Virus record (IMG/VR): IMGVR_UViG_3300044680_000280
Span: 124,001-188,000 of that record
DNA length: 64,000 nucleotides
Direction: 5' to 3' (one strand)
The first letter of the stretch is position 1. Every line of letters begins with the position of its first letter. The position numbers and the translations under genes are program-made. The notes under the pieces were generated by a model. The model saw only the letters and a program-made list of their open reading frames with translations. It was not told where the DNA came from and ran no database searches. This document shows positions 1 through 52,987 of the stretch, piece after piece.

Positions 1-3000
1 TCGGAGGAATCCGTTACCCAGGTCGTCGAGGAGCGTGACGCCCGCGACTGCCGTCTGGTTTGCCGTGACGGGGTCGAGAGTTCGCTCGATGCTGGTAAAG
101 CCCAGAATCTTGCGGTGCGTATAGGGAGTCGCCACGTCGATTGCTGGGGAGCAGGACGCTCCTGCAACCGCCGCCGCAAAGAAGGTTCCGTCCACGATGC
201 TGTCGTAGGACTGGCCGGTCTCGTCGGTCAGGGTGATATCCGAGCTGTCGGGGTAGAGAGCCAGGATACGGTTCGAATTGAGGCTCTTGGCAACGGACTG
301 AGCATTGCTTGGAGTGGTTCCCGAAGCGAATCCGATCATACCCATGCGCTCTGCTTGATTTCGAATGCTCGACTGAACTTCGCAGTGCTGCGTGAGGTAC
401 GCAAACACTGAGGTGTCCGTCGCGAGCGGAACGATGACGTCGGGCTTGACATTGCCAGGAAGCGGGGTCGCGAGACCTTGAATCGCAGCGATGAAACTCG
501 CATCCGACGCCTGGTTCGTGTTCGCGACGGTGAGAACCTGGTCGATACCAACGAGAACCGCACCGTTCTGGACCATCAGATAGAAGGCAAGGGAGACGCG
601 GTTCTGCGGGCTGACCGCACCGAAGTTGGCCTCGACTGTCTTCTGCTGCTGGTAAAGACGAGTCGTGTAGTCCTGCTTCATGTACGTGTAGGACACGTAG
701 TAGGAGTCACCAATCGAAGGCGCGACGCCCGAGGGGTCGAACGTTTGAACCGTACCTGTATCGTTCACTCCGACACCGACCGTGTTCGAAACCGTTGTCT
801 CGAGACCGGGAATGGCGTACGTCGGAATCGACGAGGACACCTGGAAGGTTTCGCTTACGGTCAGGGTGAAGCTTCCAGCCGAGTCGTACGAGCCGCTCGA
901 GGCTGGGAGAACTGTGAAGCGAAGTCCCGTGACTTCGTCAACATAGGTCTGACCAGGGTAACCGACGTTGTTCGTACCCGTACCCGTACCGCTCGCATTC
1001 GAGGAGGTGACGACGTAGTTGTTCGTGGCGTCTTCGCCGTTATCCCCATCCGTACCAGGCGTGAGCCCGATGTTCGTAGTGGGATTGAAGGCCGAATTAC
1101 CCGAGGTGACGAAGGCGATGCTAGAGGATGCCGCACCGACGGTCAAAGACTCGAACGTGATGTAGTTCAAGCCATTGAGCTGATCGACATAAGCGACCGC
1201 GCCGCTTACGAAGCCCGACGTGGCCATCAGCTCATCGACAACTTCGTAGGCGAAAACCTTCGTCTGCGTTGCCGTCTGATTGACGGTGAGTCCGAGAGTC
1301 GCGTTCGACGTGCCCGAACCGATGGAGATGATCGAGTTGGCGTTATTCGTGGGGCTCGTCAAACGGAGCTTGTTGACGTTTCCAAGAGTTCCCGCCGACG
1401 CAACACCCGAAAGGCCCGGAACCGTATTGATGAGCGTCACAAGGGTCGACGTGGTAACGGAAGTACCAGCCGTCAGGGTGATGGTGTACTGAACCCCATT
1501 GACCGTAATGATGAGCTGGTCGTTGACACCCGCCGTGATGTTGAACGGTCCCGCAACCGATCCGAGAATCGTAGCGGGCTTGTTGATCGCACCAGGGGTG
1601 CCGTTCGCCGACTGGAAGGTCGTGAATCCAAGAACCGTCTCAACGGTTCCCTGCTCAATCGTGATGTTCGACACACTATCGAAACCGCCGGGGAGAGCCG
1701 CCGGAGTCGAGTAGCTGAAGATGTGAAAGAGCACGTCTCCGCCCGAGATCTGCGATAGGCCGGCGAGATGGTTCGGCGCCGTACCCGAGAAGGTGGCGTT
1801 CGCATCGATTGCCGCGTTGATCGCAGCCACGATAGCCGTAGGGGTCAGACTTCCGATAGGGATCGGGGCTACGACCGCCGTGCCGTCAATGAGCAGGTTG
1901 AGGTAGGGGGCCACTTGGGCTGTCGTCGCCGAATTCGTTGTACCCGTGTAAGATGCACTGAGCGTAACGACCGTACCAACAACCGTGGAAACGGTGTACG
2001 GAGTACCGGGCTGAGAAGCGAAGGTGACCTGAGAACCCGCTGTCAAGTAGCCCGTCTGATTGAGCGACGCGTTGACGACGGCCGAGGATGCCGTCACGGA
2101 GAATGTGCCGAGGAGGGCAGTTCCCGTGATGGTGATGTCACCGCCTGAAGGCGTAACGTGCTTACCGACGACAACGCCGCGAGCGGCCGACGCCAGGTTT
2201 GTCGTCACGTCCGTTCCATTGACCTCAGTTACCCAGGTTGCTGAGTAGGGGCTGAAGAAGCTGTAGGGCTCGGAGTTTCGATTCGTGAAAGAGGCGTTGT
2301 TCGCAGCGGCAGTCCCGAAGGTCACCGTGACAACCTCAGACACGGGCGTTCCAGCACCCGTGTGGAACGCATCCGGAATCGACTGCGAACCGCGAGGCCA
2401 CTGGACTGTCTCCGAAAGACCAGACTTCGTACCGAAGAGGATCTGGTAGAGGGGAGCGTTGTTGTTCGCATCGAGCATCGTGTACTGCCCGAATCCCAAA
2501 CCGCCCGGAACTTGGCACGTGAGGATGAAGGTATCGTCCTCGATGCGAGAGTACCAGAAGGTCGCAAACGCTTGGAAGTCCGGCGGAACCGGATTCTGAA
2601 GAGTGATGAGTCGGTTGGGGCCGTCGACCGCCGTAACAGTGACCTGTCCACGGTTCAGCGCATCGCGAAGAGACCGACCCACGTAGACCGTAACGAGGTC
2701 GGGTCGGTTCGTGACAACGTCTTGTCGTGAATTGGTAACCGACGCGAACAGGGTTTGTCCGAGTGGCGTATTGCGTCCGTTACCAGTGGTCGGCACCTCG
2801 GGAAGGAGGAACTGGTTCGGCGATACTGTTGCAGGAATGACCTGCGTGTTCGTCACTCGCGAGCACGGAGCGAGGAAGAGCTGGTCGTCGATGAGAAGCC
2901 CAGAGACTAGAGTCTCGTCGAACGGTTGAGCGCCCGGCGTCGTGGAACCCGCCGCAACGACGAAGCTTGTACCCCAGAAGATGACCGACACCGACGATGA

Positions 3001-4143
3001 CGGATTCGAAAGCACGAAATCCGTTCCCGGAAGGTAGTCGTTTCGACCCATCGCGATACCGCACTGAAGGATCGAGGTGACGAGAGCGTTCGGAAGGTAG
3101 TCGAACGTATCCTGCCAGGTATTCGAGAAGTACGTGACCGTGACGGTCGTCCCCGCGGCGGGCGCGAAGGAGAGAGTCACAATACCGTTCGTACCGTCGA
3201 GAGCCGTCGGAATGGTCTGCGTTCCGTTGACCTTGACGACGACCTTGCTTGTATCCGTCGTGGTAACGCCGCCGCCGCTGCCATCGACAACCGGGATCTG
3301 GTAAACCTGGAAGGCCTGGTTGCGAGTGGTCGCGGTCCCCGATGAGAATCCGAGAAGGCCGTTGGCCGTGCCAGAACCGATGACGAGATTCTGCGTCGTG
3401 GTGAGCTGAACGTGATTCAAACCGTCGTTGTCGGTGGAAACCGTAGCAACAAGGTTGGCGATAGCCGCCGCGTTGACCGCAGAGGCGAATCCCGCCGCCG
3501 TGTAAGTGTTGGCACCGAGAGTGATCGTTGAGCTCGTGCCGTTGACGGTGACCGTGAACTGGTCGCTCTGACCCGAAACAACCGTGTACGGTTCGGCTGC
3601 TGGCGAGACGAGAATCGCCTGAACTTGGGTGACCTGCGAAGAAACGTCATCCGTAAAGGATGTGTCGCCGCGGTGGAAGTAGTACGTAACTCGAACAATG
3701 TCCGTCGGTTGCGTCGGAACCTGAAGGGTAATGAGGCCCTTGGCGCCCTGAACCGAACCGACCGCGACCGGCGTACCGTTGACGGTAACAGTAACGGCAT
3801 TCGCCGAGTTCGTTACGATTCCTGTACCCTGTCCGTTGGTAATCGGAAAGTTTCGAACCTGGAAGGTCACGAGAGTTCCCGTCTGAACTCCAAGCACGGG
3901 GTTTTGGGGGTTGGTCGCGTTGACGACCCACTCTTCCGTGACGTCCTCGTTCACGATCTGCTGATCGACCGTTGCCGACGAACCTCGAACGAGCTCAACG
4001 TTATCGATCTCCAGGTCCTCCTGGCCGACACCGACAACTACCGGGATCCTTAGACCGGCAGTGAGGTTCGCAGTGTTCGCTTGCGTTAGCGTGCGGGTGT
4101 ATACGCCCGGGGGAACATAACTGAGGAACGGTCCCAAACTCAT
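1..4143 (-). CDS. Contractile tail sheath protein, 3'-partial (>1381 aa; runs off the left edge)
   Basis: ATG at 4143 reads MSLGPFLSYVPPGVYTRT (typical sheath YxxPGVY start). The frame was open wherever I translated it and ends at position 1 with NQTAVAGVTLLDDLGNGFLR, like a sheath C-terminal domain. Missing from the ORF track because its stop lies outside the window. Confidence 0.9.
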   Translation of the reverse strand, partial: MSLGPFLSYVPPGVYTRTLTQANTANLTAGLRIPVVVGVGQEDLEIDNVELVRGSSATVDQQIVNEDVTEEWVVNATNPQNPVLGVQTGTLVTFQVRNFPITNGQGTGIVTNSANAVTVTVNGTPVAVGSVQGAKGLITLQVPTQPTDIVRVTYYFHRGDTSFTDDVSSQVTQVQAILVSPAAEPYTVVSGQSDQFTVTVNGTSSTITLGANTYTAAGFASAVNAAAIANLVATVSTDNDGLNHVQLTTTQNLVIGSGTANGLLGFSSGTATTRNQAFQVYQIPVVDGSGGGVTTTDTSKVVVKVNGTQTIPTALDGTNGIVTLSFAPAAGTTVTVTYFSNTWQDTFDYLPNALVTSILQCGIAMGRNDYLPGTDFVLSNPSSSVSVIFWGTSFVVAAGSTTPGAQPFDETLVSGLLIDDQLFLAPCSRVTNTQVIPATVSPNQFLLPEVPTTGNGRNTPLGQTLFASVTNSRQDVVTNRPDLVTVYVGRSLRDALNRGQVTVTAVDGPNRLITLQNPVPPDFQAFATFWYSRIEDDTFILTCQVPGGLGFGQYTMLDANNNAPLYQILFGTKSGLSETVQWPRGSQSIPDAFHTGAGTPVSEVVTVTFGTAAANNASFTNRNSEPYSFFSPYSATWVTEVNGTDVTTNLASAARGVVVGKHVTPSGGDITITGTALLGTFSVTASSAVVNASLNQTGYLTAGSQVTFASQPGTPYTVSTVVGTVVTLSASYTGTTNSATTAQVAPYLNLLIDGTAVVAPIPIGSLTPTAIVAAINAAIDANATFSGTAPNHLAGLSQISGGDVLFHIFSYSTPAALPGGFDSVSNITIEQGTVETVLGFTTFQSANGTPGAINKPATILGSVAGPFNITAGVNDQLIITVNGVQYTITLTAGTSVTTSTLVTLINTVPGLSGVASAGTLGNVNKLRLTSPTNNANSIISIGSGTSNATLGLTVNQTATQTKVFAYEVVDELMATSGFVSGAVAYVDQLNGLNYITFESLTVGAASSSIAFVTSGNSAFNPTTNIGLTPGTDGDNGEDATNNYVVTSSNASGTGTGTNNVGYPGQTYVDEVTGLRFTVLPASSGSYDSAGSFTLTVSETFQVSSSIPTYAIPGLETTVSNTVGVGVNDTGTVQTFDPSGVAPSIGDSYYVSYTYMKQDYTTRLYQQQKTVEANFGAVSPQNRVSLAFYLMVQNGAVLVGIDQVLTVANTNQASDASFIAAIQGLATPLPGNVKPDVIVPLATDTSVFAYLTQHCEVQSSIRNQAERMGMIGFASGTTPSNAQSVAKSLNSNRILALYPDSSDITLTDETGQSYDSIVDGTFFAAAVAGASCSPAIDVATPYTHRKILGFTSIERTLDPVTANQTAVAGVTLLDDLGNGFLR

Positions 4144-4268
4144 TTTCGAGGCTCCCAGAGGAACGAAGGGTTAGGTCTGAATGCGTGTCTGATCTAAATC
4201 TGTCGCGAAACGCGAGAAGTGTCGTCTGGTTTGGATTTAGTATCTACGCAGTGAGACCTAACAAAGGA

Positions 4269-4712
4269 CTAACGATTCTTTCGATTTTCAGCCCTTTGTG
4301 CCCGCATCGAGTCAAATACAGCGTTCGAAAGTTCCTTACGGGCTTGCCTACCTGTCTGGGTCATAGGCTCATAATCGATAAAATCTCGACTCGTACGACG
4401 GATGAGCGCATGGGTGCCGCCCAACGCTCGAGCTTCCTGCTTGACCCTCTCCCGTTCGTGATATTGGGCCCATCGAGCCTCAGCGTCCCGACCGACCACC
4501 TTGTCAGCCGTTGGGTAATCGTCGACATGAACCCCCGTGTTGGCGGTTGAGCCAGTCGTGGAACCCTTGAACCCAAAAGACATGTTGCCGTCCCACACCC
4601 TAAACGCATCCTCCCCGCACTGGGGACACGCATGAGTCAGGTTCTCTGCCATCTTGAGGGTTCTTTCGAACTCCAATGAGCAATCGTTGCACTCAAAAAC
4701 GTATCTAGGCAC
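4269..4712 (-). CDS. FmdB-type zinc-ribbon protein
   Basis: MPRYVFECNDC...CPQCG: MPxYxF-CxxC...CxxC pattern. Confidence 0.7.
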   Translation of the reverse strand: MPRYVFECNDCSLEFERTLKMAENLTHACPQCGEDAFRVWDGNMSFGFKGSTTGSTANTGVHVDDYPTADKVVGRDAEARWAQYHERERVKQEARALGGTHALIRRTSRDFIDYEPMTQTGRQARKELSNAVFDSMRAQRAENRKNR

Positions 4713-4719
4713 GGGTCAC

Positions 4720-5922
4720 CTACTTGATCCTTTCGAAGTCACTATTCCGGCCAGCAAACAGGGGGAGGGTCGCGAAGACCAGATTGTTCGCTGTAGCGAT
4801 GAGCCCGGCCGAACTCGTTGGATCGCTGGGATCTGGAACCGTGCCCACAATAGCCGGACCGGGAATGGTCGGTTGAAGCTTGCTGATGGTAAAGGGTAGA
4901 GGAACGTGGAGTTCCCAGTCCGTCTGAATCTGAACGGTAAGGGAAGACGTGTACATGATGATCTCCCCGGTCTCATCCATGGGCTCTTCGCTCTCACCAC
5001 CCAAACTGATGTCAGTGATCTCAATACCCTCGTTCGAGAGAAAAGGACGCTTGTCCGCCCAAAGGTACATCATGACCCAATCCGAGATTTCCTCTCGCTG
5101 AATAGGGTCCTGGGATATGACATCGAGCTCGAAAGTCATATCCCACTTACCCCCGAACGCCTCAGCAGTGGCGACGCGGTCCTGCGTGACCACAATAGCC
5201 ACGGTATCGCCCTTTTTTGCCCTCTTTCCAAATGCCAGCACCACCCCCGGTAAGGTCTTGAAGTCCGCCGTGTTCCACTGGAATGCAACAGGACCTATGG
5301 ACTCAGCGGCATATCGATAATTGGCCGTAATCCTAGCACCCGGATTAAACGGGGTGAGAAACCGTATCTCCGAGGTTTGGTAATTGACCGAATAATCCGT
5401 TCCCTCTTTAAGCATGTAGCGACCATTCTCGTACATACGAACGGTACCGGCCACGGGTGTTCGCTGGAACGCAGCGTGTGTCTCCACTCCAGATTGAAAA
5501 TAGATGATCGGCTCCTGAGTGGCATCTAGGAGGGGATCCAAAATATACTCGCCATATTCGCTCGCATTCTGGGGGACCTTCAGAATCTCCATAAAGTACA
5601 CACCCGGGATGGTTGGCATGACGTCATTGTTTGACTGAAGTACTGCCATATCCTCGCGTACCCACTCGAGCGGATATGCGGGCGTACCAAAGAAGGCGAG
5701 CATAACGTGACTGACGACCTCCCCAAGGGAATTGTCAGCGGACAGAGAAACCTTGTTGGCGTTGACCCCCTTCAGAACAATACCGTATTGCGGACGCTCT
5801 GCGAACGAGTATCGATCCTGAATAAACGGGACGACCTTATCGTACACGGGATGCTTCGAGAAGGAGTCCTTTAACTCCTCCAGTAGCCGCCGCTTCATCG
5901 CCCCGCTGAGTCGATAGAACAT
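4720..5922 (-). CDS. Virion structural protein, probable tail terminator/completion protein
   Basis: 400 aa, just upstream of the sheath. C-terminal FELDVISQDPIQREEISDWV resembles tail-completion proteins; also carries a GTDYSVNY beta-module. Positional inference. Confidence 0.45.
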   Translation of the reverse strand: MFYRLSGAMKRRLLEELKDSFSKHPVYDKVVPFIQDRYSFAERPQYGIVLKGVNANKVSLSADNSLGEVVSHVMLAFFGTPAYPLEWVREDMAVLQSNNDVMPTIPGVYFMEILKVPQNASEYGEYILDPLLDATQEPIIYFQSGVETHAAFQRTPVAGTVRMYENGRYMLKEGTDYSVNYQTSEIRFLTPFNPGARITANYRYAAESIGPVAFQWNTADFKTLPGVVLAFGKRAKKGDTVAIVVTQDRVATAEAFGGKWDMTFELDVISQDPIQREEISDWVMMYLWADKRPFLSNEGIEITDISLGGESEEPMDETGEIIMYTSSLTVQIQTDWELHVPLPFTISKLQPTIPGPAIVGTVPDPSDPTSSAGLIATANNLVFATLPLFAGRNSDFERIK

Positions 5923-5923
5923 A

Positions 5924-6931
5924 CTATCCCGCGTGCTCTTCCAAAGCTAGAACGAGGAGACCTTCGGCTACCGCCGTCATGGGGTCTCTAGCCATACGGA
6001 TCTCACTGATGTTGACGGGAAATCCCTTCTTCTTGATTTCCCCGTACTCTTCCTTGAAGACCTGTTCGAAGTTACCAGCCAGCGTCGTACCGCCAGAAAT
6101 GACGAATGGGATGGGGTCGGGCAAATCGACGCTCGACTGCACCCGATTAAACTGAACCGCGATATTCTCGAGACAGTACCGAATGAGGGAACGGGCATAG
6201 AGGGCGATGGCTTCCTCATCCCGGTTGCTTTTGCTGGGATTGGCAATATCGACGCCACGTTCCTTGAGAGCGCACATCCGAGATGCCGTACTACCCATGG
6301 CTTTCGCAGCGTTCCGGTCGATCCAGTCTCCCCCGCGAGAGAGTGAGAACTCGAGACCCTTCACCGTCTGGTAAGCCAGAGCAACGTTGCACATTCCACT
6401 CCCAAAGGAGACGGCCAGCCCCGAGAAAGTCTGGTCAGCGCACTGCGAATAAATGAGGGCCATCGCCTCATTCATCGGGTGTGCCGTGTATCCCTGCTCA
6501 GAGAGGATCTTGCGGAAAATCTCCGTGTGGTAAACGATGTCCTGATCGGCATCGATGGGCGCCGCCGGCACTGAGTAAAAACAGTGTTCTCCAGCGACTC
6601 GGGGCGTTTCGACAACATCCTTGATGAGGAGACTCAAAACCTGCTGGGCCTTGAGCTCTCCTGCCGAAATGACTCCCTGACTGAGGGGACGTCGAACCTC
6701 CCGCTTGAACAGATTTGCCATGGCGAGAGCCGAATCTCCGATAACGATGAGCTGACCATCGATGTCCACGAAGTCTACCTTCGATAGACGGAGCTGCTTT
6801 TTGACCTCGGGCTCCAAGTCCAAGAAGGCGTCTCGGATTCGCTTGGTTGTGATCTTGTCTCCGACCTGCCTGGCCGAAACGACATTCATCGTGCCCAGGT
6901 CCAACCCAATTCCCACGCTCTCTTTGCTCAT
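5924..6931 (-). CDS. Actin-fold (MreB/FtsA/ParM-like) ATPase
   Basis: All five actin-superfamily motifs in order: IGLDLGT (phosphate 1), NEAMA (connect 1), SFGSGM (phosphate 2 variant), SGGTT (adenosine), PMTAVAEG (connect 2). Confidence 0.85.
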   Translation of the reverse strand: MSKESVGIGLDLGTMNVVSARQVGDKITTKRIRDAFLDLEPEVKKQLRLSKVDFVDIDGQLIVIGDSALAMANLFKREVRRPLSQGVISAGELKAQQVLSLLIKDVVETPRVAGEHCFYSVPAAPIDADQDIVYHTEIFRKILSEQGYTAHPMNEAMALIYSQCADQTFSGLAVSFGSGMCNVALAYQTVKGLEFSLSRGGDWIDRNAAKAMGSTASRMCALKERGVDIANPSKSNRDEEAIALYARSLIRYCLENIAVQFNRVQSSVDLPDPIPFVISGGTTLAGNFEQVFKEEYGEIKKKGFPVNISEIRMARDPMTAVAEGLLVLALEEHAG

Positions 6932-6979: not shown

Positions 6980-7762
6980 TCAAATCTTCCAGGGATCCCT
7001 TGCGTACTTAGCTCCGCCCTGAGACGGTTCCATTGAACGACTGCTTCGTTGCTTGAGTAAGTATACGAACTCCTCATGCTTGTCGGCGAAGCTTTGAAGG
7101 AGATTCTCGATACCATCGGTCATGGTGCCTTTGGCTTTCATCAGCTTGGACACGATCTGAAGTAGAACGAGAAAGCGAAGAGCTCCTTTGAGGGAGATCA
7201 GAACGTTTTCATCCGGGCTCGCCACAAGCGGGGCACCGTTGTAAAGTTCCTTAAGAATCAGCAGCACATGCGTAGACTGGATGACCGCGTTGACAAGTAC
7301 TGGCGTTCCTACACCGACTGAACGCTCGGCCAACTGGTCAATCATCTTGAGAGTGTCGTTGTACAGACGTTCGAAAAGCTGGTGATCCGCGTAGAAGGAG
7401 GGGCCAGACGCCTGCCAGTGATGGGTCTGATGGGCCAGGTTGATCGCCCGCATGAACGACAAGAGAGCCGCGAGCTCAGCCATTGACTCCTGACCATAGT
7501 CGAGAAGGAAATGGGCGAGAACGTTGGCGACTTCTTCGTTAGCGGCCTCCTTGCTGACCATCGCACGCACTTCGGCCAGCGAATCACTATCAGGCACGCC
7601 CGAAGCTTGCTTGGGGTGTCCAGCAGCTTTCCACGTATCGGCCCCAGGAAGATAGGGAGGACCCATCTTCAGGTGGTCGTACGTTGAGGGGTCGTGCCAG
7701 ACGGCATAAATTGCCGGAGCGTGACCGTTCTCGTACGGATTCTCGGGACCTTGATCAGCCAT
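6980..7762 (-). CDS. Dps/ferritin-like four-helix-bundle protein with N-terminal extension
   Basis: HQTHHWQASGPSFYADHQLFERLY...IDQLAER matches the Dps HW-x-G-x-F-xx-H...D-xx-AER pattern. Likely start is the ATG at 7762 (MADQGPEN), not the track start at 7882. Confidence 0.75.
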   Translation of the reverse strand: MADQGPENPYENGHAPAIYAVWHDPSTYDHLKMGPPYLPGADTWKAAGHPKQASGVPDSDSLAEVRAMVSKEAANEEVANVLAHFLLDYGQESMAELAALLSFMRAINLAHQTHHWQASGPSFYADHQLFERLYNDTLKMIDQLAERSVGVGTPVLVNAVIQSTHVLLILKELYNGAPLVASPDENVLISLKGALRFLVLLQIVSKLMKAKGTMTDGIENLLQSFADKHEEFVYLLKQRSSRSMEPSQGGAKYARDPWKI

Positions 7763-8123
7763 CGGTCGTCGGTTCTGATTCGGGAACCTCGAAGGAGGTC
7801 GCCTTCCACTCGTCGTCGGCCATCTTCTTCCGTTTGGTCTGCACTTTTGGACCTGGACCTGCTCCCATGGCTGCTTCCTCACGGAGATCCTGCCCTACAC
7901 TCGAGGGAGTCTCCCGTTCGGGCTTAGCAGAAAATGACTTGCCTGAGTAGGGCGACCTGACGGTCATCCTTTTTTCCTCAAGCCAGAACCGATGTCCTTC
8001 GGCGTCCGTGTATTTCCAAAGCATGGGAGATGCAGCCTGCTGCTTCTTCCCACTGTTTTTGGCAGCAAGCTTCTCGATGAGCTCACCGGCTTGTTTGCTG
8101 AGCTGATTTTGAACAGGGTGCAT
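7755..8123 (-). CDS. Hypothetical protein (122 aa)
   Basis: ATG start; overlaps the next gene by 8 nt; contains K/R-x-A motifs. Confidence 0.65.
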   Translation of the reverse strand: MHPVQNQLSKQAGELIEKLAAKNSGKKQQAASPMLWKYTDAEGHRFWLEEKRMTVRSPYSGKSFSAKPERETPSSVGQDLREEAAMGAGPGPKVQTKRKKMADDEWKATSFEVPESEPTTDG

Positions 8124-10920: not shown

Positions 10921-11205
10921 CTACACCGTGGATGCTGAGACCTTCTCCAAAATCATAGCGAGCAACGGACCGATCTTCTCGAACTCGGTCCTCATGTCCT
11001 CCGAGACTTGTTTGAGGAGAGCAACATCCTCATTGGTCGAGGTCACAATCCGTTCGATAGAATCCAACCGACGAATGACACCGGCGAGGTCGTTGTCTAC
11101 CTCATCCACATGCCTGGTTACAAGCTCGAGTTTCGGAGCCACCGCGGCAACAACGGCGATCATAGTCTCTGAGTCTAGATTCTCGAATGTTGCTCTTGTA
11201 CCCAT
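10921..11205 (-). CDS. Hypothetical coiled-coil protein (94 aa)
   Basis: ATG overlaps the upstream TAA (TAATG coupling); heptad pattern. Confidence 0.6.
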   Translation of the reverse strand: MGTRATFENLDSETMIAVVAAVAPKLELVTRHVDEVDNDLAGVIRRLDSIERIVTSTNEDVALLKQVSEDMRTEFEKIGPLLAMILEKVSASTV

Positions 11206-12089
11206 TAGAACCCCACAAACTTTCGTGGACTCAATACACCACGTCCTGCATAGGGTCCGAAAGCGCTTCGAATACCCGTACCAAACTTAGGTTGCTGGAC
11301 ACCCTTGAGGATGTTGACGGTAGCTTTCGCCTTCTCAAGTTGCTGCGTGAAGTTCTCTTGAGCCGCCTGCTGGGCCGCCTCGTACTTCGAAGACTTGTCG
11401 AGGTTTAGGCTCACCCCGCCGATGGTATAGTCGAATTCATCGGCAACCCAATTGATACGAAGCGCCTGAAGGGCGAAGACCATCGCACCCGTCAGAAGCA
11501 AAGTGCGCCACTCAGGTTTCATCGCAACCATGGCGTCAACACTGGCAAACGGTGTCCTAGGGGGAGATGCGATGATCTCATCAAGGGACCGCTCAAGGTA
11601 TTCCTTAAGTTCGTTATTTTCCCAAATGAAGCCGAAGACTCGGCTAAACTGAGATATGGTCTCTTCGTGGGTCGGCGGACGAAAATGGTAATTGCGGTCA
11701 GGAGAGTTTGACACAAGCATACCAGACTTCTGAAGGATGAAATTGTGCCAACCTTCTGCCGTGAGATCATACATGTAGCGACGAGAAGAAAGTCTCTCTG
11801 TAGATAGAACCCGAACTGATGAAGAAGCACCGGCAACGACCGTTTGGGGACTCAGTGACTCCACCTCAGTCTTGAGTTTCGGGGTAAGAAACACACGATG
11901 ACCACCAGTCAGGACAGACGAGCCTTTCGTTGTATGTACCCTAAAAATAGGCTCTGACTCGACCTCTGCGCGCTGTACTTGGAGAACTCGCTTCCACTCC
12001 TGCACCCCGTTCGGGGACACGGATCGAACTCGCAAGGTCCCCGTGTAGAATGCGGACTTGATTCTCTCACTTTGCTGGGGAGTTAACAT
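11205..12089 (-). CDS. Split-intein C-precursor: IntC (aa 1-128) plus 166-aa C-extein of a probable head-tail adaptor/neck protein
   Basis: Block B VLTGGHRVF, block F MYDLTAEGWHNF, block G GMLVSN|S(+1). No block A. Has its own SD (AAAGGA, 5 nt before ATG). Confidence 0.88.
   Translation of the reverse strand: MLTPQQSERIKSAFYTGTLRVRSVSPNGVQEWKRVLQVQRAEVESEPIFRVHTTKGSSVLTGGHRVFLTPKLKTEVESLSPQTVVAGASSSVRVLSTERLSSRRYMYDLTAEGWHNFILQKSGMLVSNSPDRNYHFRPPTHEETISQFSRVFGFIWENNELKEYLERSLDEIIASPPRTPFASVDAMVAMKPEWRTLLLTGAMVFALQALRINWVADEFDYTIGGVSLNLDKSSKYEAAQQAAQENFTQQLEKAKATVNILKGVQQPKFGTGIRSAFGPYAGRGVLSPRKFVGF
11706..12089 (-). mobile_element. IntC fragment of an atypically split intein (128 aa)
   Basis: HINT blocks B, F and G; terminal Asn followed by Ser+1; penultimate Ser instead of His; no Cys in the fragment. 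Confidence 0.85.
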
Positions 12090-12345
12090 CGAAGTCCTTT
12101 TCCGTCCAGATCAAAAAGTCCCACCCCATACTGGCCGCATAGGAAGAAGCTGCCTCAAGTCGACGCTGCACGTTATGGTCCGTTGGGAGAGACAGCACCC
12201 AACTTGCTTTAACTTCAATGAGAGCAACGGTTCCATCCTGATGTGTCACAACAAAGTCTGGAAGCATCCAGCGACCGTCCGGAAGTTCTATTCGCGGTTC
12301 GAATACGTACTCTCTAACGGAGGGGTCCTGGTCTAATAAGGACAC
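12067..12345 (-). CDS. TnsA-N-like PD-(D/E)XK endonuclease (92 aa, possibly N-truncated)
   Basis: LLDQDPSVREYVFEP...LPDFVV...LIEVK...GWDFLIWTE matches the TnsA N-terminal / T4 gp4-like nuclease pattern. GTG start, no clear SD. Confidence 0.75.
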   Translation of the reverse strand: MSLLDQDPSVREYVFEPRIELPDGRWMLPDFVVTHQDGTVALIEVKASWVLSLPTDHNVQRRLEAASSYAASMGWDFLIWTEKDFDVNSPAK

Positions 12346-12362
12346 AACGACAAGGGATCAGT

Positions 12363-12860
12363 TCAGGATGTGCCGTGAATGGCTTCGTATAGGTCACGGA
12401 TAGATACTACCATATTCTCCCCACTCACGTCAACTTCTATCGTCTCCTCTTCACCTACACAATTGTCCCTAAGTAGAATACGGAGTCTCCGACCCATGTC
12501 CTGCTCCGCGGACGTTAGGGTCGGTTCAATCGAATCCGGGTTGACCTTGTCAATAACCGAAAAGTTCATGAGCACTTGCTGAATGGGCGCCCCCGGCATT
12601 TCACGAAACGTCCAGCGAATGCGATATTCTCCTAGATTTGCGTCCAAAGGAACGATAATGCTCGCAAAGTACTCCCCTAGCGATGGGTTGACGGGCTGAC
12701 GACGCGGAGCCCCAACGAGAACTTCGCGTCCCGTCGTAAAGTCGTAGAGAGCGTAGCTAATCTCGGCAGCGTTCTCGGGGGTTCCGTTGACGTTGTCGAG
12801 AAAAATGCTCAAGTCGTTACGACCGAGCTGCTGTCCCTTGTAAAAAGCGCTACCGCTCAT
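12363..12860 (-). CDS. Split-intein N-precursor: 133-aa N-extein (Ig-like structural domain) plus IntN (32 aa)
   Basis: Ends ...RILLRDN|CVGEEETIEVDVSGENMVVSIRDLYEAIHGTS*, an intein block A (Cys1...I-x-DL) followed by a stop. Confidence 0.82.
   Translation of the reverse strand: MSGSAFYKGQQLGRNDLSIFLDNVNGTPENAAEISYALYDFTTGREVLVGAPRRQPVNPSLGEYFASIIVPLDANLGEYRIRWTFREMPGAPIQQVLMNFSVIDKVNPDSIEPTLTSAEQDMGRRLRILLRDNCVGEEETIEVDVSGENMVVSIRDLYEAIHGTS
12366..12461 (-). mobile_element. IntN fragment of an atypically split intein (32 aa)
   Basis: Cys1 codon at 12461-12459; block A-like sequence; acidic composition complementary to the basic start of IntC. Confidence 0.8.
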
Positions 12861-13186
12861 TTGACCTCTTCGAGATCCTCCTGTGGCACAACGTGTCGAC
12901 CGTTCTTCTCGAGCTGTACATAGAACTTTCCAAACGGAATGTATTTCTCGATGGTACCCACGTCTCCGTGCCAGTGAGTTAAACCGTGAGAGGGCAGAAC
13001 CCTTACCCTCGTGCCTGGCTTCAGGCTAGACGGCACGCTCGCAACGCGAGCGACAACCTTCTTGACAATGAGGGCGTCCTGAAAATCTCGAAGTTCTCGA
13101 CTCATGGCCGTCTTTCCTTGGGACTTCCTCTTACTGGGAAGCCAATCCTCGTTTTCTGCGTCTAGGTGTATCTCAAGCTTGGCCAT
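12857..13186 (-). CDS. Small protein with C-terminal SH3/KOW-like domain (109 aa)
   Basis: Likely ATG at 13186 coupled to the ART stop (TAATG); LKPGTRVRV...GDVGTIEKY...FYVQL is an SH3-like barrel pattern. Confidence 0.6.
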   Translation of the reverse strand: MAKLEIHLDAENEDWLPSKRKSQGKTAMSRELRDFQDALIVKKVVARVASVPSSLKPGTRVRVLPSHGLTHWHGDVGTIEKYIPFGKFYVQLEKNGRHVVPQEDLEEVK

Positions 13187-14415
13187 TACTTCTTCTTTCC
13201 ACCACGTCCAACACACTTACCGTGTATGGCTGAAGCTCCCATCACAACCATCTCAGCCTCACCAGTATAATCTGTATTCGTTTTGGCTTTTGGGTTTGCA
13301 TCGGATCCCATGATCGGGGTCGTCAGATAGGACCAAAAGATATTTTCCACGGGAACCTTCATTTTGAAGGCGGTTCCAAAGCCGGTAGCTTGAGACGGGT
13401 CCGAGGAAAAGCTTGAAAGTTCCCTTGTCTTCACCACGAGGTCATCCCCCGGCTGAGCCTTATCGGCACCTTGCCCATTGACTCCCCTGAACAAGGTGAG
13501 TTCCTTCAATCCAAGATGCTTAAAAACAGCACGGTTGAATTTCAGAATCTCGTGGGCGTACTCTTTCATTGCTTGGTCCTTGGCACCCCTGGCCCGACCC
13601 TCTTTGGCGTCCGCCTCTTCCTTGGGAAGAGTGTAGCCCTCAACCCCGAGACTGCTCATGAGCCCATTGATCTCATCGGAGGGTGGTTGACCAGAAGAGT
13701 CCGTCCAGTCCATGACCAACCCATTATGGACCTTGTTCAACTTGGAATTGGACTTCAAATGCTTTTCAAAGTACTCCCCGATCATGTACCCGTTGACGTG
13801 GAGTAGCTTCTCAGCTTCAGACAACTGAGAGAAAGCCTCCTTAGCGACGGAGGGGGTGTCCTTGTCAGACCTGGCACCGAATTTCTTCTCGTATTCGGCA
13901 ACACCCTTCTTCATCTTCCCAATCACCTCATCCAAAGCCGCCTTGTGTTTGGAAAGGGTCTCATCTACTTCCTTGTCCGTAACGATGAGTTCCCCTTTTG
14001 GGGACATTCCAACAGACTTCTTGCTCTCCGTCCTTTTGCCATTGGACTTCGAAGGTTCGGTCTTGGGCTTCGAATCCGTGGACTTATCGGACTCTTCCTT
14101 AGGGGCTTCTCGAGGTATGGGGTCCCTCTTCTCAGGATTCTTCTTGGCCCACTCGTGGTACTCTTTGAGGGCCTTCCGAAAAACGTCTTTATCCTTGAGC
14201 GCCGTCGTAAAGGAGACATCCTTGAAACGGTCTCTGGTTTCTGGATTCGGATTGGGAACCTTTTCCGATCCGCCCTGATGGACCTTATCTAGCCACTCTT
14301 TCCACCGAGGCGGTACCCCACCCTTAGATGGATCCTCTTCCTGAGCGTCCGCGGTGCGGCCCAAGAATCGGGTCATAACTCTCAGAGCAATAGGGTTCAT
14401 TCGACTCAATCCCAT
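13186..14415 (-). CDS. ADP-ribosyltransferase-domain protein (R-S-E class)
   Basis: C-terminal TLFRGV (R), LSSFSSDP (SxS), GEAEMVV (ExE) in canonical order; charged low-complexity N-terminal half. Confidence 0.78.
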   Translation of the reverse strand: MGLSRMNPIALRVMTRFLGRTADAQEEDPSKGGVPPRWKEWLDKVHQGGSEKVPNPNPETRDRFKDVSFTTALKDKDVFRKALKEYHEWAKKNPEKRDPIPREAPKEESDKSTDSKPKTEPSKSNGKRTESKKSVGMSPKGELIVTDKEVDETLSKHKAALDEVIGKMKKGVAEYEKKFGARSDKDTPSVAKEAFSQLSEAEKLLHVNGYMIGEYFEKHLKSNSKLNKVHNGLVMDWTDSSGQPPSDEINGLMSSLGVEGYTLPKEEADAKEGRARGAKDQAMKEYAHEILKFNRAVFKHLGLKELTLFRGVNGQGADKAQPGDDLVVKTRELSSFSSDPSQATGFGTAFKMKVPVENIFWSYLTTPIMGSDANPKAKTNTDYTGEAEMVVMGASAIHGKCVGRGGKKK

Positions 14416-15803
14416 CCGTACTTAACTACCCGACAGGTCGGATCCCCTGGAATCGGTTTGGTCACGGCATCAACGACCTGAAACGGAAAATCTACCGTAG
14501 TGGGGGCACCCTGAAAGGTCACCTGATAGGACCACCTTATGAGCCAATTACCGGGTTGACCGTTCTCCCCCGACGTTCCCGTAGCGTAGTAAAGCCCCAC
14601 CTTCTGCATAACGGGGGACTTTGCGAATGGACCCGTCTGCATAATGAGCTGACCCCGAACCTGGTACATCGTGTAGCTCACGTTGTACGGAGAAATGGGA
14701 TTTCGAGAACGATCGAAGAGGCAGAGCATAAGATCCCCCCTCGTGAACATGTACCCCCAGCGAAACTGCTTGGTCAGACATGGATTGGTCTGAACATTCC
14801 CACCATCATCGGGGCACTTGCATCCGCCCCCGTGTGGATGGTATTCATCGTTACCGCCGCCACAATTACCGCTGTACGGATAACTGCCCTGACCGTACGG
14901 ATAATTTCCACCGCCCCCACAATCCCTACCCCGTCCAGGAGATAGTAATCGCCATCCCTCTTTGCGCTCCCAAATGTCTAGGTTCGTGTGACCGCACAAC
15001 CTCAACTGAGACCGCTCCCAGTTGTCAGGTAGCGTAGGTTCAGGGTTAGAACTGATGGGTGGGCAGACCGTAGTGACAAGAAGGAACGCGGCGCCACCAC
15101 CCTCTCCGAAGATCGGCATAGGAGCTGAATCCGCTGTCGTTGCAAATCCCAACGCTGAGCCACTCAAAAAATCGTAGGTGAAGAAGTTGGGCTCAGAGAC
15201 CGTAGCACCACCCGACGTAGATCCAGAGAGTAGAACTGCAATGTTGTCGAGAACGGTCGCCATGCCCCCGTCCCGCCCCGAAACGAGGGCAAGAAGATGG
15301 GGCACGGGTGTCGATAGGGTAGCAACCCCTCCGTCTCGACCAGTCTCACGGTAGACCGTATGCGGGGGAATAACTCCAGTGGCAACAATGACCGCCGAAC
15401 CGGCCAAGAGGGCGGTCACAGTGTCCGTTCGAAACGTAGACCCTCCCTGCAACGTAAGGATGACCCCACAGTCGACTCCAGACGCGGTGAATGTTGACTC
15501 GCTTGCTATCTCCGAAGCAACGCCGTCAGACACGAACACGGATTCACCGAACATGTCGGAAACAGCACCAACGTTCACGCGAGGCGTCAACGAGGAGTTT
15601 GCTGATGGGGAGGAGGAGACGGTATATTGAGCTGAAGCGTTGAACGCAATCGTAGCGCTTCCAGACGCAACAGAACCAGCCGCATAGTGCGCCTTTGGAA
15701 TATGACCGAATGACGAAGCTCCGGCCAGGTCCGTCGCTACGAAGTACCTCTCCGTGACAAACGAATCCGCGACGATATTCGCACTAGCGGACATCAGAGG
15801 CAT
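14406..15803 (-). CDS. Virion structural protein (465 aa) with C-terminal Ig-like domain
   Basis: Ala/Ser/Thr-rich N-terminus, Gly/Cys-rich linker, and a C-terminal domain resembling the N-extein at 12462-12860. Confidence 0.6.
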   Translation of the reverse strand: MPLMSASANIVADSFVTERYFVATDLAGASSFGHIPKAHYAAGSVASGSATIAFNASAQYTVSSSPSANSSLTPRVNVGAVSDMFGESVFVSDGVASEIASESTFTASGVDCGVILTLQGGSTFRTDTVTALLAGSAVIVATGVIPPHTVYRETGRDGGVATLSTPVPHLLALVSGRDGGMATVLDNIAVLLSGSTSGGATVSEPNFFTYDFLSGSALGFATTADSAPMPIFGEGGGAAFLLVTTVCPPISSNPEPTLPDNWERSQLRLCGHTNLDIWERKEGWRLLSPGRGRDCGGGGNYPYGQGSYPYSGNCGGGNDEYHPHGGGCKCPDDGGNVQTNPCLTKQFRWGYMFTRGDLMLCLFDRSRNPISPYNVSYTMYQVRGQLIMQTGPFAKSPVMQKVGLYYATGTSGENGQPGNWLIRWSYQVTFQGAPTTVDFPFQVVDAVTKPIPGDPTCRVVKYGWD

Positions 15804-15806
15804 AGA

Positions 15807-16190
15807 TTAGGCCTCAGTGATTTGCAACTGCCCCGCTGGGAAGGAAACTTGCGTAGATGCTAGAACGGTCCTCGGGGCTCCAAGGGCGCCGTAGTAGAGC
15901 AGGTTACCGCCCGACACGTTGTCCACGATACCCCATGCGACAATCGTACCCCAGGTAGCTGAAGCGGTAGGGAACAAGATGTCCGCAACGTTGGATACAA
16001 CTCCTTCACTCGCAGACGTCCAGGTAACTGCTTGACGCGCGTACGATCCACCAGAAACCTCAACACCGGCAGAAGTCGGAGTCGGAGAAGTCGTATAGAT
16101 AGCAACGTATACGGCGGGGGGCGACTCATACGAAACGTCGTTCAGCACCGCGTTGAGCATAACGTTGTCGAGGTACTGGCTCTTGGGCAT
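15807..16190 (-). CDS. Small tail-fibre-associated protein, paralog of 16878-17270
   Basis: YLDNVMLNAVL...VYVAIYTT...EVSGGSYARQAVTW pattern seen in phage minor tail proteins. Confidence 0.65.
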   Translation of the reverse strand: MPKSQYLDNVMLNAVLNDVSYESPPAVYVAIYTTSPTPTSAGVEVSGGSYARQAVTWTSASEGVVSNVADILFPTASATWGTIVAWGIVDNVSGGNLLYYGALGAPRTVLASTQVSFPAGQLQITEA

Positions 16191-44187: not shown

Positions 44188-45681
44188 TCACGACCCCAAA
44201 TCAAAGAGTCGTCCCTTATCAGTAAAGGACACCTTCTCTTCGGACGTGAGGTCACGGCCCAAAACGTTTCGACAGGCTGTCAGGAATGCGTCCGTATCCT
44301 TATACGGGCGCATTCCGTTAACAGCGAGTACCGTCGAATAGACTCGTGACTCACCGGCCTTGAAGGACCTTTTCGTCATGAGATCGATTTGACGGGAGAC
44401 TGCAAGTAACTCACGACCACTGAACGAGCCCGTCTTTACGAGGGAAGCCCATCCACCGTTCTTGTGCAAAATCAAGCCCCAAAGGACCTTTTTCGCAATA
44501 GAAACGTCGCGTGTTGAAGCTAGGACACTCTTCGCAATAGCGCGCCATTGAGAACTCTGGAGGGAGGACTTGATGATCGACTCGTTCTCTCGATTCTCAT
44601 CGAGTCCGAGATTGGACACTTCGTCCTTAGAGATCTCGTCACGCACCTTCTTAACGACGTGGTCACGAATCGTGTTCGCCAGATCGTCGACCGCCTTCGA
44701 AAGCGGACTGGCCTCGGGCTTCTTGTCCTCTTCCTTGGGGGTTGATTCTTGGGGGTCCGTGCCAAAGTCCTCCGAGAGAACCCTACGAACATGTTCCGGG
44801 ACGATCAATCGAGCCGCCTTCGACATAATGCCGTTGTCGTTCGCGCGAATGGGTTGTGAGAACGCAAAGGACATTTTGCCCTGCAAGTTCTCAATGTCCC
44901 CTGCCGTTAGGATGCTTCGAAGTACTGCCCCGGTGAATGCGGGATTCGCAACCCAAGAAGCCTCGATGAATCGAACCGAACCCGGTTCCTCCGTCACGTG
45001 ACCGCAGAGCTCAGCGATCTTACGCTTCTTACCGAAGCTATCGTAGAAATCGGAGCCCTTGAAGTACTTGACGTGAGGGCAAAGTTGAGTCTCATCGTAC
45101 GCGACATTGCCGCATTTCGTGCAGAGCGTGAACTGAACCTGGCAACCCATGGATAGGGTCTTCAAAGTTCCGTCAGAGATGGCTTTGACGAGAGGCTTGT
45201 GTTTGCGATCCGTTGCTACGAGGATGTCTACGTAAATGGAGTCGCCGATGTCACGAGCCGCACTGTCAATGATTTTGCCCTTAGAGAGCTCCGGGATCTG
45301 AATGTGCTCAACGTAGTTTTCTCCGCCCGTGAAGGTGCGGAACGATGCCATGAGGAGCTTGCGTTCCCAGCAATCGTTGTTGTTGTTGATGTACTTGAGC
45401 GTGCCCGGCGTGACGTGCCAGTCGGCGTATTTTCGATCGATCTGAAAGTTCTCAACAACCATCTTGCCGAGGGGCTGGTCGACTTGCTCCGTGTCAACTG
45501 AAGCAATGATGGTGCAGTGCGATAGTAAGTATTGCTTCGGGTCGTACTTGTCTAGAACGACCTTCGACGCATTGCGTACGTTAAAGGTGGTTTCGGTAGC
45601 TCGCGAACGGATCTCATCCCAACCAGCGAAGGTAATCGCTGGTTTGACGAGAGCTGCATTGGCGAACTTATTAAAAGCCAC
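44188..45681 (-). CDS. Prohead (capsid maturation) protease with zinc-finger insertion
   Basis: NYVEH (His), LSMGC (Ser nucleophile), CTKCG...CPH Zn motif, EASWVANPAF; position before the scaffold. Confidence 0.78.
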   Translation of the reverse strand: MAFNKFANAALVKPAITFAGWDEIRSRATETTFNVRNASKVVLDKYDPKQYLLSHCTIIASVDTEQVDQPLGKMVVENFQIDRKYADWHVTPGTLKYINNNNDCWERKLLMASFRTFTGGENYVEHIQIPELSKGKIIDSAARDIGDSIYVDILVATDRKHKPLVKAISDGTLKTLSMGCQVQFTLCTKCGNVAYDETQLCPHVKYFKGSDFYDSFGKKRKIAELCGHVTEEPGSVRFIEASWVANPAFTGAVLRSILTAGDIENLQGKMSFAFSQPIRANDNGIMSKAARLIVPEHVRRVLSEDFGTDPQESTPKEEDKKPEASPLSKAVDDLANTIRDHVVKKVRDEISKDEVSNLGLDENRENESIIKSSLQSSQWRAIAKSVLASTRDVSIAKKVLWGLILHKNGGWASLVKTGSFSGRELLAVSRQIDLMTKRSFKAGESRVYSTVLAVNGMRPYKDTDAFLTACRNVLGRDLTSEEKVSFTDKGRLFDLGS

Positions 45682-51154: not shown

Positions 51155-52987
51155 TTATCCGAATCGGTTGTCCGGCGGGGCCGCTTCCTCTTCCTTGATC
51201 TTGAGACCCAGGTACTCGGCAATCTTCTTGGTGACATCGCTCTTTTCAGCCAACGACTGACCAACCGCACTATACAGACCACGAGACATCTCGGTGAATA
51301 TCGCGTCATTGACCGTGAACATGTCATTCTTGATCTTCCGAGCCGTGTCGTCCGGATCGATATTGAACATCTCGAGAATGAGGTCGATCGAGATCGAACC
51401 CTTCTGGTAGAGGTTGAAGAGAGCGTCGTAGGTGTCCTGCGAGTCGCGGAGCGGCAAACGAGTGAAGGAAAGACGGGGGTACAGGATGACTTCTTCGCCC
51501 CACTTATCCTTCTCAACGAATCCCTTGCGACGGGCAACGGGTTTGAACAAGTACTCTTCGACGTATTCTTGGATCATCTCTCGAAGGAATAGGTATCGCT
51601 GATTGATGACCTCGAGCTTCAAGCGGTCGCCAGAGTACAGGGTCTCACCAGAAAGCAAGGATTCCGTAACGCCTAGACCCGTGCGTAGACGACGTTCTGT
51701 TTGCTCGTATTCAGCCGAAAGGTCGAGAAGACGGTCTTTAGACCCCATTTCCTCCCAGTGAACCTCATAGTTGGCAATGATAGAGTAGTCAGGATCGACA
51801 AGGGACAAGTCGACCTGCTCTCGGAGGTCATCAGCATCGGCGTCAGAGATGTCCTCCGCCCAAACGATGCGCTTAGGAGTCATCGCACGGTCGGCAATCT
51901 GAGTTTGAGCCTGACGAAGTTTTTCACGATAATACAGAGTTCGAAGACACCGATCCAGAATACTCTGCCCCAGCTCCTCGCCCGCCTGCTTGCGGCTCGA
52001 GAGCATGTACACGAAGCTTCCTTCGTCGGGATCCGTGCCAAGAGGAATGAGGCGCCCCTGCCCGATGTACTCACGTACTTCCTCGGGCATCTCTTGGACC
52101 ATCTCCTCAGCGACGGGATCTCCTAGTTTGGCTTCCTCCAACAAGGCACGATCTCGCTCTGACGGAATGAGCTCAACACGAACCTTATCCGAAAAGGAGA
52201 ACGTTTTGACTTCGACCTGATCGATCGGAAAGATGATGAGACGATCCCACCCTTGGTAGTGCTTCTGGTAGTAGGAGAGTTCCTCTTCCTCTCGGTTGTC
52301 TTTTTCGATGTATCCTTTTTCGAGAACTTCTTTCGCCTCGCCGTCCTCCATAAGAACGTTCTTCGGAACCGTCTGTTCGCGATAACCAACGTCGGGCGGA
52401 ACTTGAACGTCGGAATCTTCAGCAAAAATAGGGCAAGTACCGTCCAACCATAGGTGGTGAACTGCCATAATGAGCTTCTGAAAGAGTTTGACCTTCTTCG
52501 TCATTCTCTCAAAGAAGCTGAGAATGTACTTGCCATAGTCCTCAGCACTTTCGAATCCCTTCGGAAACGTACGAGGTTTGGGTGCTGCAAGGCGTACCTT
52601 CGAGAGCGGGAGTTCTGTATGAAGGTCGATCGCTTGCGCTACGATCTCATCCGTATTGTAGAAGTGTCGGTAGATCTCCCGCTTTTCCCGAATCGATTGC
52701 GGAAGCTGAAGAAAGTCTGTCGATAGTTGCGGAGAAAAGAACGAGCTGGAGCCCGACTGTACCGTGTTGGCGCCCATCACGGGATCGATGGCAAAGGCGG
52801 AGGACTTGTTACGATAACTCCCCATCTGGCGAGCTTGCTCCCTCGCCATCCGCTCCTTGGCGGTCAACGGTTGCATCTTGTTCCCGTACGGCTGCGAGAC
52901 ATACGGACGGTTTCTGGCTGGCGCCGAGGGCACCACCAGTCCACCACGTACATTCGTGACGTTCGTGAACTTACTACCTAGGGGCAT
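51155..52987 (-). CDS. Portal protein (610 aa)
   Basis: Position downstream of TerL; portal-like helices (IVAQAIDLH, SILDRCLRTL, TGLGVTESLLSGE, LSFTRLPLRD). Confidence 0.85.
   Translation of the reverse strand: MPLGSKFTNVTNVRGGLVVPSAPARNRPYVSQPYGNKMQPLTAKERMAREQARQMGSYRNKSSAFAIDPVMGANTVQSGSSSFFSPQLSTDFLQLPQSIREKREIYRHFYNTDEIVAQAIDLHTELPLSKVRLAAPKPRTFPKGFESAEDYGKYILSFFERMTKKVKLFQKLIMAVHHLWLDGTCPIFAEDSDVQVPPDVGYREQTVPKNVLMEDGEAKEVLEKGYIEKDNREEEELSYYQKHYQGWDRLIIFPIDQVEVKTFSFSDKVRVELIPSERDRALLEEAKLGDPVAEEMVQEMPEEVREYIGQGRLIPLGTDPDEGSFVYMLSSRKQAGEELGQSILDRCLRTLYYREKLRQAQTQIADRAMTPKRIVWAEDISDADADDLREQVDLSLVDPDYSIIANYEVHWEEMGSKDRLLDLSAEYEQTERRLRTGLGVTESLLSGETLYSGDRLKLEVINQRYLFLREMIQEYVEEYLFKPVARRKGFVEKDKWGEEVILYPRLSFTRLPLRDSQDTYDALFNLYQKGSISIDLILEMFNIDPDDTARKIKNDMFTVNDAIFTEMSRGLYSAVGQSLAEKSDVTKKIAEYLGLKIKEEEAAPPDNRFG

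Follow-up and report, generated by a model that had tools for sequence, protein, structure and literature searches.

How one protein could be produced from a gene that lies in two pieces, each of them carrying part of an intein, is the question raised by a locus in the IMG/VR virus record IMGVR_UViG_3300044680_000280. The DNA analysed, hereafter the window, is the 64,000-nucleotide (nt) stretch from positions 124,001 to 188,000 of that record, and the locus occupies window positions 11205-12860 on the minus strand. As in fractured genes, it contains two co-oriented open reading frames (ORFs), here called ORF1 and ORF3, which lie at one locus, carry the N-terminal (IntN) and C-terminal (IntC) fragments of an intein, respectively, and have their own stop and start. 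Taking all the evidence into account, the locus is considered, with a probability of roughly 0.85, to be a fractured gene in which a virion-module protein of about 299 amino acids (aa) is encoded as two ORFs by virtue of a class-1, S1-split intein inserted at the site RDN-(N/S)PDRNY (the hyphen marks the insertion point).

Anatomy of the Two Gene Halves

The elements of the locus, all of them on the minus strand, are the following:

12462-12860 (-): N-extein, 133 aa, a beta-sandwich domain and a first helix, ending in ...RRLRILLRDN
12366-12461 (-): IntN, 32 aa, from Cys1 (TGT) to ...HGTS, comprising block A, a beta hairpin and the first helix; charge -7
12363-12365 (-): TGA stop closing the N-terminal precursor, with equivalent stops in all split relatives
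12067-12345 (-): endonuclease remnant ORF, 92 aa, read as the C-terminal piece of a TnsA-like PD-(D/E)xK nuclease
12095-12099 (-): AAGGA Shine-Dalgarno sequence of the IntC gene, inside the endonuclease's conserved ...WTEKDF codons
11706-12089 (-): IntC, 128 aa, with a Met-Leu start and terminal Asn128, comprising blocks B, F and G; charge +7, no Cys
11208-11705 (-): C-extein, 166 aa, from Ser+1 (TCT), with the SPDRNYHFRPP motif, a helical domain and a disordered tail

Thus, ORF1 (12363-12860) encodes 165 aa, the 133-aa N-extein being followed by the 32-aa IntN, CVGEEETIEVDVSGENMVVSIRDLYEAIHGTS, which begins with CVGEEET and runs directly into the TGA. ORF3 (11205-12089), in the same frame as ORF1, encodes 294 aa, made up of the 128-aa IntC and the 166-aa C-extein. 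IntC begins with MLTPQQ and contains block B (TGGH, IntC residues 61-64), block F (YMYDLTAEGWHNF) and block G (LVSN). The features of a class-1 intein are present, namely Cys1 in block A, the TxxH motif, Asp and His in block F, and a terminal Asn followed by Ser+1. The two halves had been described in an earlier, sequence-only reading of this stretch, whose coordinates, lengths and residues for both ORFs and both intein fragments agree with these in every case; it was also correct in stating that Cys1 is the sole Cys of the intein and that the +1 nucleophile, which opens the C-extein, is Ser. The sum of the two exteins (133 + 166) gives a predicted spliced product of 299 aa, the length of the closest intein-free homologues. 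The two fragments show charge complementarity, with IntN ranging from -6 to -8 across the related loci and IntC at +7 in the window.

Both halves have translation signals. The AAGGA of the IntC gene is located 5 nt before the ATG of ORF3, so that this ORF has its own Shine-Dalgarno sequence, as had been noticed from the letters alone, and most relatives have a GA(G/A)AAGGA-type tract ahead of their IntC start. The ATG of ORF1 overlaps the stop codon of the ORF upstream (ATGA), with GAGG upstream of it, and the stop of ORF3 overlaps the start of the next gene (TAATG), which places the pieces in one tightly packed operon. In a public collection, the gene call P0001 (window 11775-12089) corresponds to a 189-aa product starting with MYDLTAEG, that is, inside the intein; automatic annotation therefore cut IntC short and hid the intein.

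Host-Gene Homologues and the Insertion Site

A search with the C-extein retrieved 1092 homologues, mostly of 297-306 aa and uninterrupted. Among the closest is P0002, with 91% identity over the C-extein and 81% over the N-extein. P0002 and P0004 have exactly 299 aa, lack the intein and read ...RRLRILLRDN-NPDRNYHFRPP..., and the N-extein aligns with residues 1-133 of the 299-aa intein-free proteins P0002-P0004. It had been predicted that homologues contiguous across the junction would exist, and they were found when the two pieces were searched separately: P0002-P0008 read LLRDN-NPDRNYHF. It has to be noted that the junction Asn of the intein-free alleles is replaced by Ser or Cys where the intein is present. 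The nearest relatives by extein sequence are intein-free, and those that bear the intein have more distant exteins; the presence of the intein is thus polymorphic among close relatives, which fits the expectation for a mobile element. No uninterrupted second copy of the host gene occurs within the 64-kb window, which is part of a genome of about 463 kb.

A distant paralogue of the N-extein beta sandwich has been found in the window, in the C-terminal ~110 aa (14436-14765, minus strand) of the 465-aa ORF 14406-15803 (28% identity, E 5e-6). An upstream paralogue of this domain is also present in most related loci.

Contiguous Relatives and the HINT Fold

Among 1.84 billion representatives, IntC proved to have only 35 relatives, some split and others contiguous. 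At the same insertion site, P0126, P0128, P0135, P0136 and P0138 are contiguous proteins with the order N-extein, mini-intein and C-extein, as is the IMG/VR locus L021. When aligned with these contiguous inteins, ORF1 and ORF3 tile them with no overlap and no residues lost: IntN aligns with the first ~32 residues of the inteins of P0126, P0135, P0136, P0138 and L021, and the two ORFs are parted at a loop whose length varies.

An AlphaFold2 model of the contiguous L021 intein, for which the alignment rows were the split halves of 14 loci, including those of the window, reached a predicted local distance difference test (pLDDT) value of 89 and a predicted template-modelling score (pTM) of 0.81. 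Inteins and intein-like HINT (BIL) domains account for all of the model's top 50 Foldseek matches in the PDB, at template-modelling scores of 0.6-0.8, the best match being the crystal structure of VidaL (E 1.8e-8, 19% identity). Thus, the proposal that the two halves make up a HINT domain is supported both by the tiling and by the fold of a contiguous relative. In the model, the split falls in the loop joining the first helix to the second, upstream of block B, and a split N-terminal to block B is of the S1 (atypical) type, in agreement with the short-IntN split that had been recognised before. At the sequence level, IntC gives marginal intein matches in the PDB, none below E 0.07, with blocks B, F and G in register with those of solved mini-inteins. 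A scan of the window with a hidden Markov model (HMM) of IntC revealed no further related intein.

Endonuclease Remnant between the Halves

Between ORF1 and ORF3, in a different frame, lies an ORF of 92 codons (12067-12345, minus strand) that had been overlooked in the sequence-only reading. It matches the Pfam family PF08722 (Tn7_TnsA-like_N) with an E value of 4.6e-9 and a score of 37.2 bits, which exceeds the cut-off of 26.5 bits, and aligns with residues ~221-315 of the intact 347-aa product of a homing endonuclease gene (HEG) in a related locus, L008 (LR745208.1), and also with the HEGs of L003 and L004. Full-length relatives of this HEG (~300-350 aa) match PF08722 too; the family comprises 47 clusters at 90% identity, on contigs of up to 442 kb, and its proteins are unnamed. 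A search of the full HEG product against PDB sequences gave no match.

An intact free-standing HEG is absent from the window, where only the last 92 of ~300-350 codons are left. The LPDF and EVK motifs are kept, and the catalytic core is incomplete, since neither the N-terminal stretch of ~220 aa nor the conserved RSSYE segment, whose Glu would be catalytic by analogy with TnsA, has survived. The remnant starts with GTG, which is preceded by neither a Shine-Dalgarno sequence nor a purine-rich tract. We therefore read the middle ORF as an endonuclease remnant and the window as a decayed member of the fractured genes, the fracture of the gene being explained by the homing-endonuclease remnant between its halves. 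The three decayed copies of the HEG (window, L001 and L011) keep the 3' end of the gene, and the location of the IntC-gene Shine-Dalgarno sequence within this end gives a reason for its survival in all of them.

Split Loci in Other Phages

The arrangement was compared with 13 IMG/VR loci (L009-L021), L008 and four groups of Logan, ENA and JGI contigs; within this set L013 equals L014, and L019 equals L008. The further split loci lie on viral contigs of 83-529 kb and on LR745208.1, a public record in which the same arrangement stands unannotated. When IntC was searched against the other loci with tblastn, E values down to 1e-53 were obtained, far outside what chance would produce. In addition to the window, at least 12 distinct loci show an IntN of 30-36 aa closed by a stop and a separate IntC ORF, with a Met-Leu start in most of them. 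IntN is 53-81% identical in 12 other loci, and the stop always comes next. IntC identity to the window is 36-68%, and none of the 13 split loci has lost Cys1, block B, the terminal Asn or the nucleophile (Ser or Cys) at +1. In IntN, IntC, the exteins and the C-terminal region of the HEG, non-synonymous differences amount to 0.13-0.32, compared with synonymous differences of ~0.75, which are saturated.

Taking into account the presence and integrity of intein and endonuclease, five states of the host gene can be recognised. The majority of the homologues are intein-free, and L021, P0126 and others have a cis mini-intein. A split intein with an intact HEG is found in L008, L010, L012, L013, L015, L017, L020 and L023, and one with a broken HEG in the window, L001/L002 and L011. 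Finally, in L016 and L018 the intein is split without a HEG, with gaps of 94-119 nt between the halves.

A second intein site, NWIADEF-(S)YSIGG, exists in the host gene of L015, L011, L017, L018, P0122, P0124 and P0128. In L015 (IMGVR_UViG_3300035150_000015, 2500-5800), the ~300-aa host protein is encoded in three pieces with two atypically split inteins, the second of which has Ser1 and a 31-aa IntN, and the pieces are separated by two endonuclease genes, one TnsA-like and the other DUF559/Vsr-like. The site-2 intein is contiguous in other relatives. In P0153 (513 aa), a Vsr-like endonuclease with the VHGCYWHGC motif is in frame with the site-2 IntC and the C-extein, and this protein may be an intermediate between free-standing and nested endonucleases. 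Directly upstream of the N-extein gene of LR745208.1, and overlapping it, there is a 374-aa ORF (L008:994-2118) with helix-turn-helix-like N-terminal repeats and a YLPDFWV motif, for which the search against Pfam returned only a weak match to HTH_5; it may be another PD-(D/E)xK mobile nuclease.

Proposed Origin and Trans-Splicing of the Fractured Gene

From the comparison of these loci we infer both the splicing activity of the intein and the order of the evolutionary events. Most likely, a contiguous mini-intein at RDN-(N/S)PDRNY would have been invaded in its S1 loop by a free-standing TnsA-like HEG, creating the split. In the genome of the window the HEG would then have lost its first ~220 codons, with the split persisting and the retained 3' end supplying the ribosome-binding site of the IntC gene. 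ORF1 and ORF3, which are co-oriented, would be co-transcribed, and the 165-aa precursor is predicted to dock by its acidic tail, the IntN of 32 aa, into the basic IntC, 128 aa long, of the 294-aa precursor, completing the HINT fold. After formation of a thioester at Cys1, the N-extein would be transferred to Ser+1, Asn128 would cyclise, and a final O-to-N shift would release the 299-aa protein reading ...LLRDN-SPDRNYHF....

It is also possible, although we put the odds somewhat below even, that the TnsA-like genes are an unrecognised HEG family homing into the S1 loop of the cis mini-intein and creating atypical splits, and that in this clade of huge phages the assembly of the virion obligatorily needs the trans-splicing of a neck protein, in some relatives from three pieces by means of two inteins, each with its own endonuclease family.

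Several observations weigh against the reading of the locus as a fractured gene joined by an active intein. The penultimate residue of IntC is Ser, which replaces the usual His. A scan for Hint domains had been suggested for both fragments, and it was positive for one of them only: IntC matches the Pfam intein splicing domain (Intein_splicing) with E 3.4e-6, under the gathering score, and ORF1 has no match in Pfam or PHROGs. The HINT fold was seen by way of a contiguous relative 36% identical to the window intein. L009 is identical to the window and may be the same assembly, which leaves the exact sequence without independent confirmation. Finally, synonymous sites are saturated in every available pair, so that a proper ratio of non-synonymous to synonymous rates is precluded and selection can be read only qualitatively, as far fewer non-synonymous (pN) than synonymous (pS) differences (pN << pS).

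The substitution in block G would suit the idea that the intein halves are domesticated interaction domains, holding the two precursors together as a non-covalent heterodimer that never splices, and PMC3045599 offers a precedent in the fragmented NrdA of phage Aeh1. However, heterodimerisation would leave two patterns unaccounted for, the retention of the residues of the splicing chemistry (Cys1, TxxH, terminal Asn and Ser or Cys at +1) in 13 of 13 split loci despite IntC identities of 36-68%, and the fact that position +1 is Asn in the intein-free alleles and a nucleophile only where the intein is present. This explanation is accordingly regarded as unlikely. Even less probable is that a mobile element broke the gene and left a non-functional, decaying copy, whose loss is tolerated or compensated by a second copy outside the window. 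The endonuclease gene has visibly decayed, and since 64 kb of a ~463-kb genome have been seen, another copy could lie elsewhere, but the decay does not extend to the exteins: both of their ORFs are intact and 81-91% identical to intein-free P0002, non-synonymous change is low, the translation signals are intact, and the same split has been kept in many diverged phages. Within the window, moreover, the only homologue of the host gene is the distant paralogue of its N-terminal domain.

The shared frame of ORF1 and ORF3 in the window might also suggest that the split is an artefact of assembly or sequencing, or is overcome by recoding, the real product being one chain in which a contiguous intein contains a nested endonuclease. 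We hold this to be the least credible of the alternatives and highly improbable. The stop behind IntN and the separate start of IntC recur in every one of the independent assemblies, which come from different samples, and the HEG ORF overlaps both of its neighbours, as free-standing genes do. The frame relations among IntN, HEG and IntC are not the same in all loci, and a frameshift or assembly artefact common to them is thereby excluded; a conserved frameshift or readthrough joining the three has been ruled out on these grounds. Thus, a fractured gene with a split class-1 intein remains the preferred reading.

Identity of the Host Protein and Genome Context

The host protein is encoded on a contig of 463,523 bp. 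In the window, the genes upstream of it include those for TerL (55390-57399), the portal (51155-52987), a protease-like protein (44188-45681) and a head protein (15807-16190), a tail-fibre-like protein is also encoded in the window, and the 451-aa ORF downstream is homologous to the 'minor tail protein' gp322 of the jumbo myovirus Tunturi_5. The gene therefore has its position in a morphogenesis module, with head genes upstream and a gp322-like tail gene downstream. The window TerL has its closest matches in LR745208.1, an uncultured phage of 485 kb (45% identity), and in Tunturi_5 (29%).

Over its full length, the host protein is homologous to Tunturi_5 gp319, a 'head-tail connector protein' and its sole homologue with a name (hhalign probability 99.8%, E 4e-29), and the homology spans both conserved motifs used as intein insertion sites. 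In Tunturi_5, minor tail, tail terminator and sheath genes follow this homologue on the same strand. The connector label of gp319 is computational, having been assigned with Phold (PMC11924767), and the Tunturi paper (PMC11924767) contains no virion proteomics. Other profiles matched weakly: 25 of 38 homologues match phrog_17327, the lowest E value being 1e-4 and that for the C-extein of the window 0.002. The host protein has no Pfam match, and a profile search of PDB sequences was empty. Bacillus phage G gp165, which is unannotated, is homologous to the C-terminal half only.

In the AlphaFold2 model of P0002 (pLDDT 70), residues 1-105 form a beta sandwich. Foldseek searches of the host-protein model in the PDB and BFVD matched only Ig-like domains, baseplate fragments and uncharacterised phage proteins, and naming the function of the protein from them was rejected for this reason.

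On the basis of the weak profile matches, the computational annotation and the synteny, the host is considered a virion-module protein, possibly of the neck or connector. The sequence-only reading had taken it to be a neck or head-tail adaptor protein: the synteny with tail genes, which is conserved, agrees with such a position, the weak phrog_17327 match and a computational label make a connector identity possible, and it is from these that we infer a neck role.

Other genes in the surroundings should be mentioned. The 335-aa ORF at 5924-6931 (minus strand) gives a full-length match to the Pfam family Volactin (PF25216; E 2.6e-72) and no match among PDB sequences. Volactin is an archaeal actin homologue, and a huge phage thus has a gene for an actin-like protein beside its structural genes. 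The 300-aa ORF at 6980-7882 (minus strand) has a Dps/ferritin-like segment, matching phrog_3636 'DNA binding protein' with E 1.3e-12 and Pfam Ferritin with E 6.5e-5, slightly below the cut-off. Finally, the 409-aa ORF at 13186-14415 (minus strand) shows a weak match, under the cut-off, to DRAT-type ADP-ribosyltransferases (E 3.3e-4), and the host gene of L023 is closely followed on its downstream side by an ART-PolyVal-like gene.

Significance

The locus extends the fractured genes from enzymes of DNA metabolism to a virion-module protein, and suggests that a TnsA-like nuclease acts as a homing endonuclease associated with inteins. The graded natural series of alleles lets one test the sequence from endonuclease invasion through split intein to persistence after decay of the endonuclease; if the wider reading of a TnsA-like homing family is true, the series of intein-free genes, cis inteins, split inteins with a HEG, with a decayed HEG and without a HEG would record the origin and fixation of split inteins.

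Atypically split inteins are sought for protein semisynthesis because an IntN of ~30 aa can be made chemically. Natural ones are few, a recent paper comparing five of them, and a single-Cys, Ser+1 family with more than 12 diverged natural orthologues, in addition to cis versions, offers raw material for consensus design. The truncated 189-aa gene call and the unannotated arrangement in LR745208.1 are also a warning for annotators.

Comparison with Known Systems

The fractured genes described by Dassa et al. in 2009 (PMC2677866) comprise a split intein together with a free-standing HEG and were found mainly in phages. As in those genes, the ORFs of the present locus overlap and the expression signals are brought by the endonuclease gene. 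In contrast to them, the host is a non-enzymatic protein of the virion module, and the endonuclease is TnsA-like (PF08722), with only its C-terminal 92 aa left. In a literature search that was incomplete, so that its result is absence of evidence, no paper on inteins in structural genes of huge phages or on TnsA-like endonucleases within inteins was found.

With regard to the position of the split, in natural split inteins IntN usually measures ~100 aa and IntC ~40 aa, whereas the window intein is split before block B, with an IntN of 32 aa. The natural atypically split inteins AceL-TerL (IntN of 25 aa), GOS-TerL (37 aa), VidaL and PolB16 OarG (15 aa), which come from phage or metagenome sources, share with it a short IntN containing only block A, a long IntC with blocks B, F and G, and class-1 chemistry. 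AceL-TerL, GOS-TerL and PolB16 OarG were compared with the window intein by description, and VidaL, the best structural match of the modelled relative, has only 19% identity, with no sequence relationship detected. Whereas the TerL inteins interrupt a terminase and that of PolB16 a DNA polymerase, the host of the present one is a putative connector. Compared with these atypically split inteins, the window intein is distinguished by its pair Cys1/Ser+1 with no other Cys, and by belonging to a large natural family in which cis, split-with-HEG and split-without-HEG alleles occur. Unlike the host gene of the window, those of Tunturi_5 gp319 and phage G gp165 are uninterrupted. In sum, the locus combines a fractured gene with an atypical split, and adds to the known systems a host class, a different nuclease family and a decayed state.

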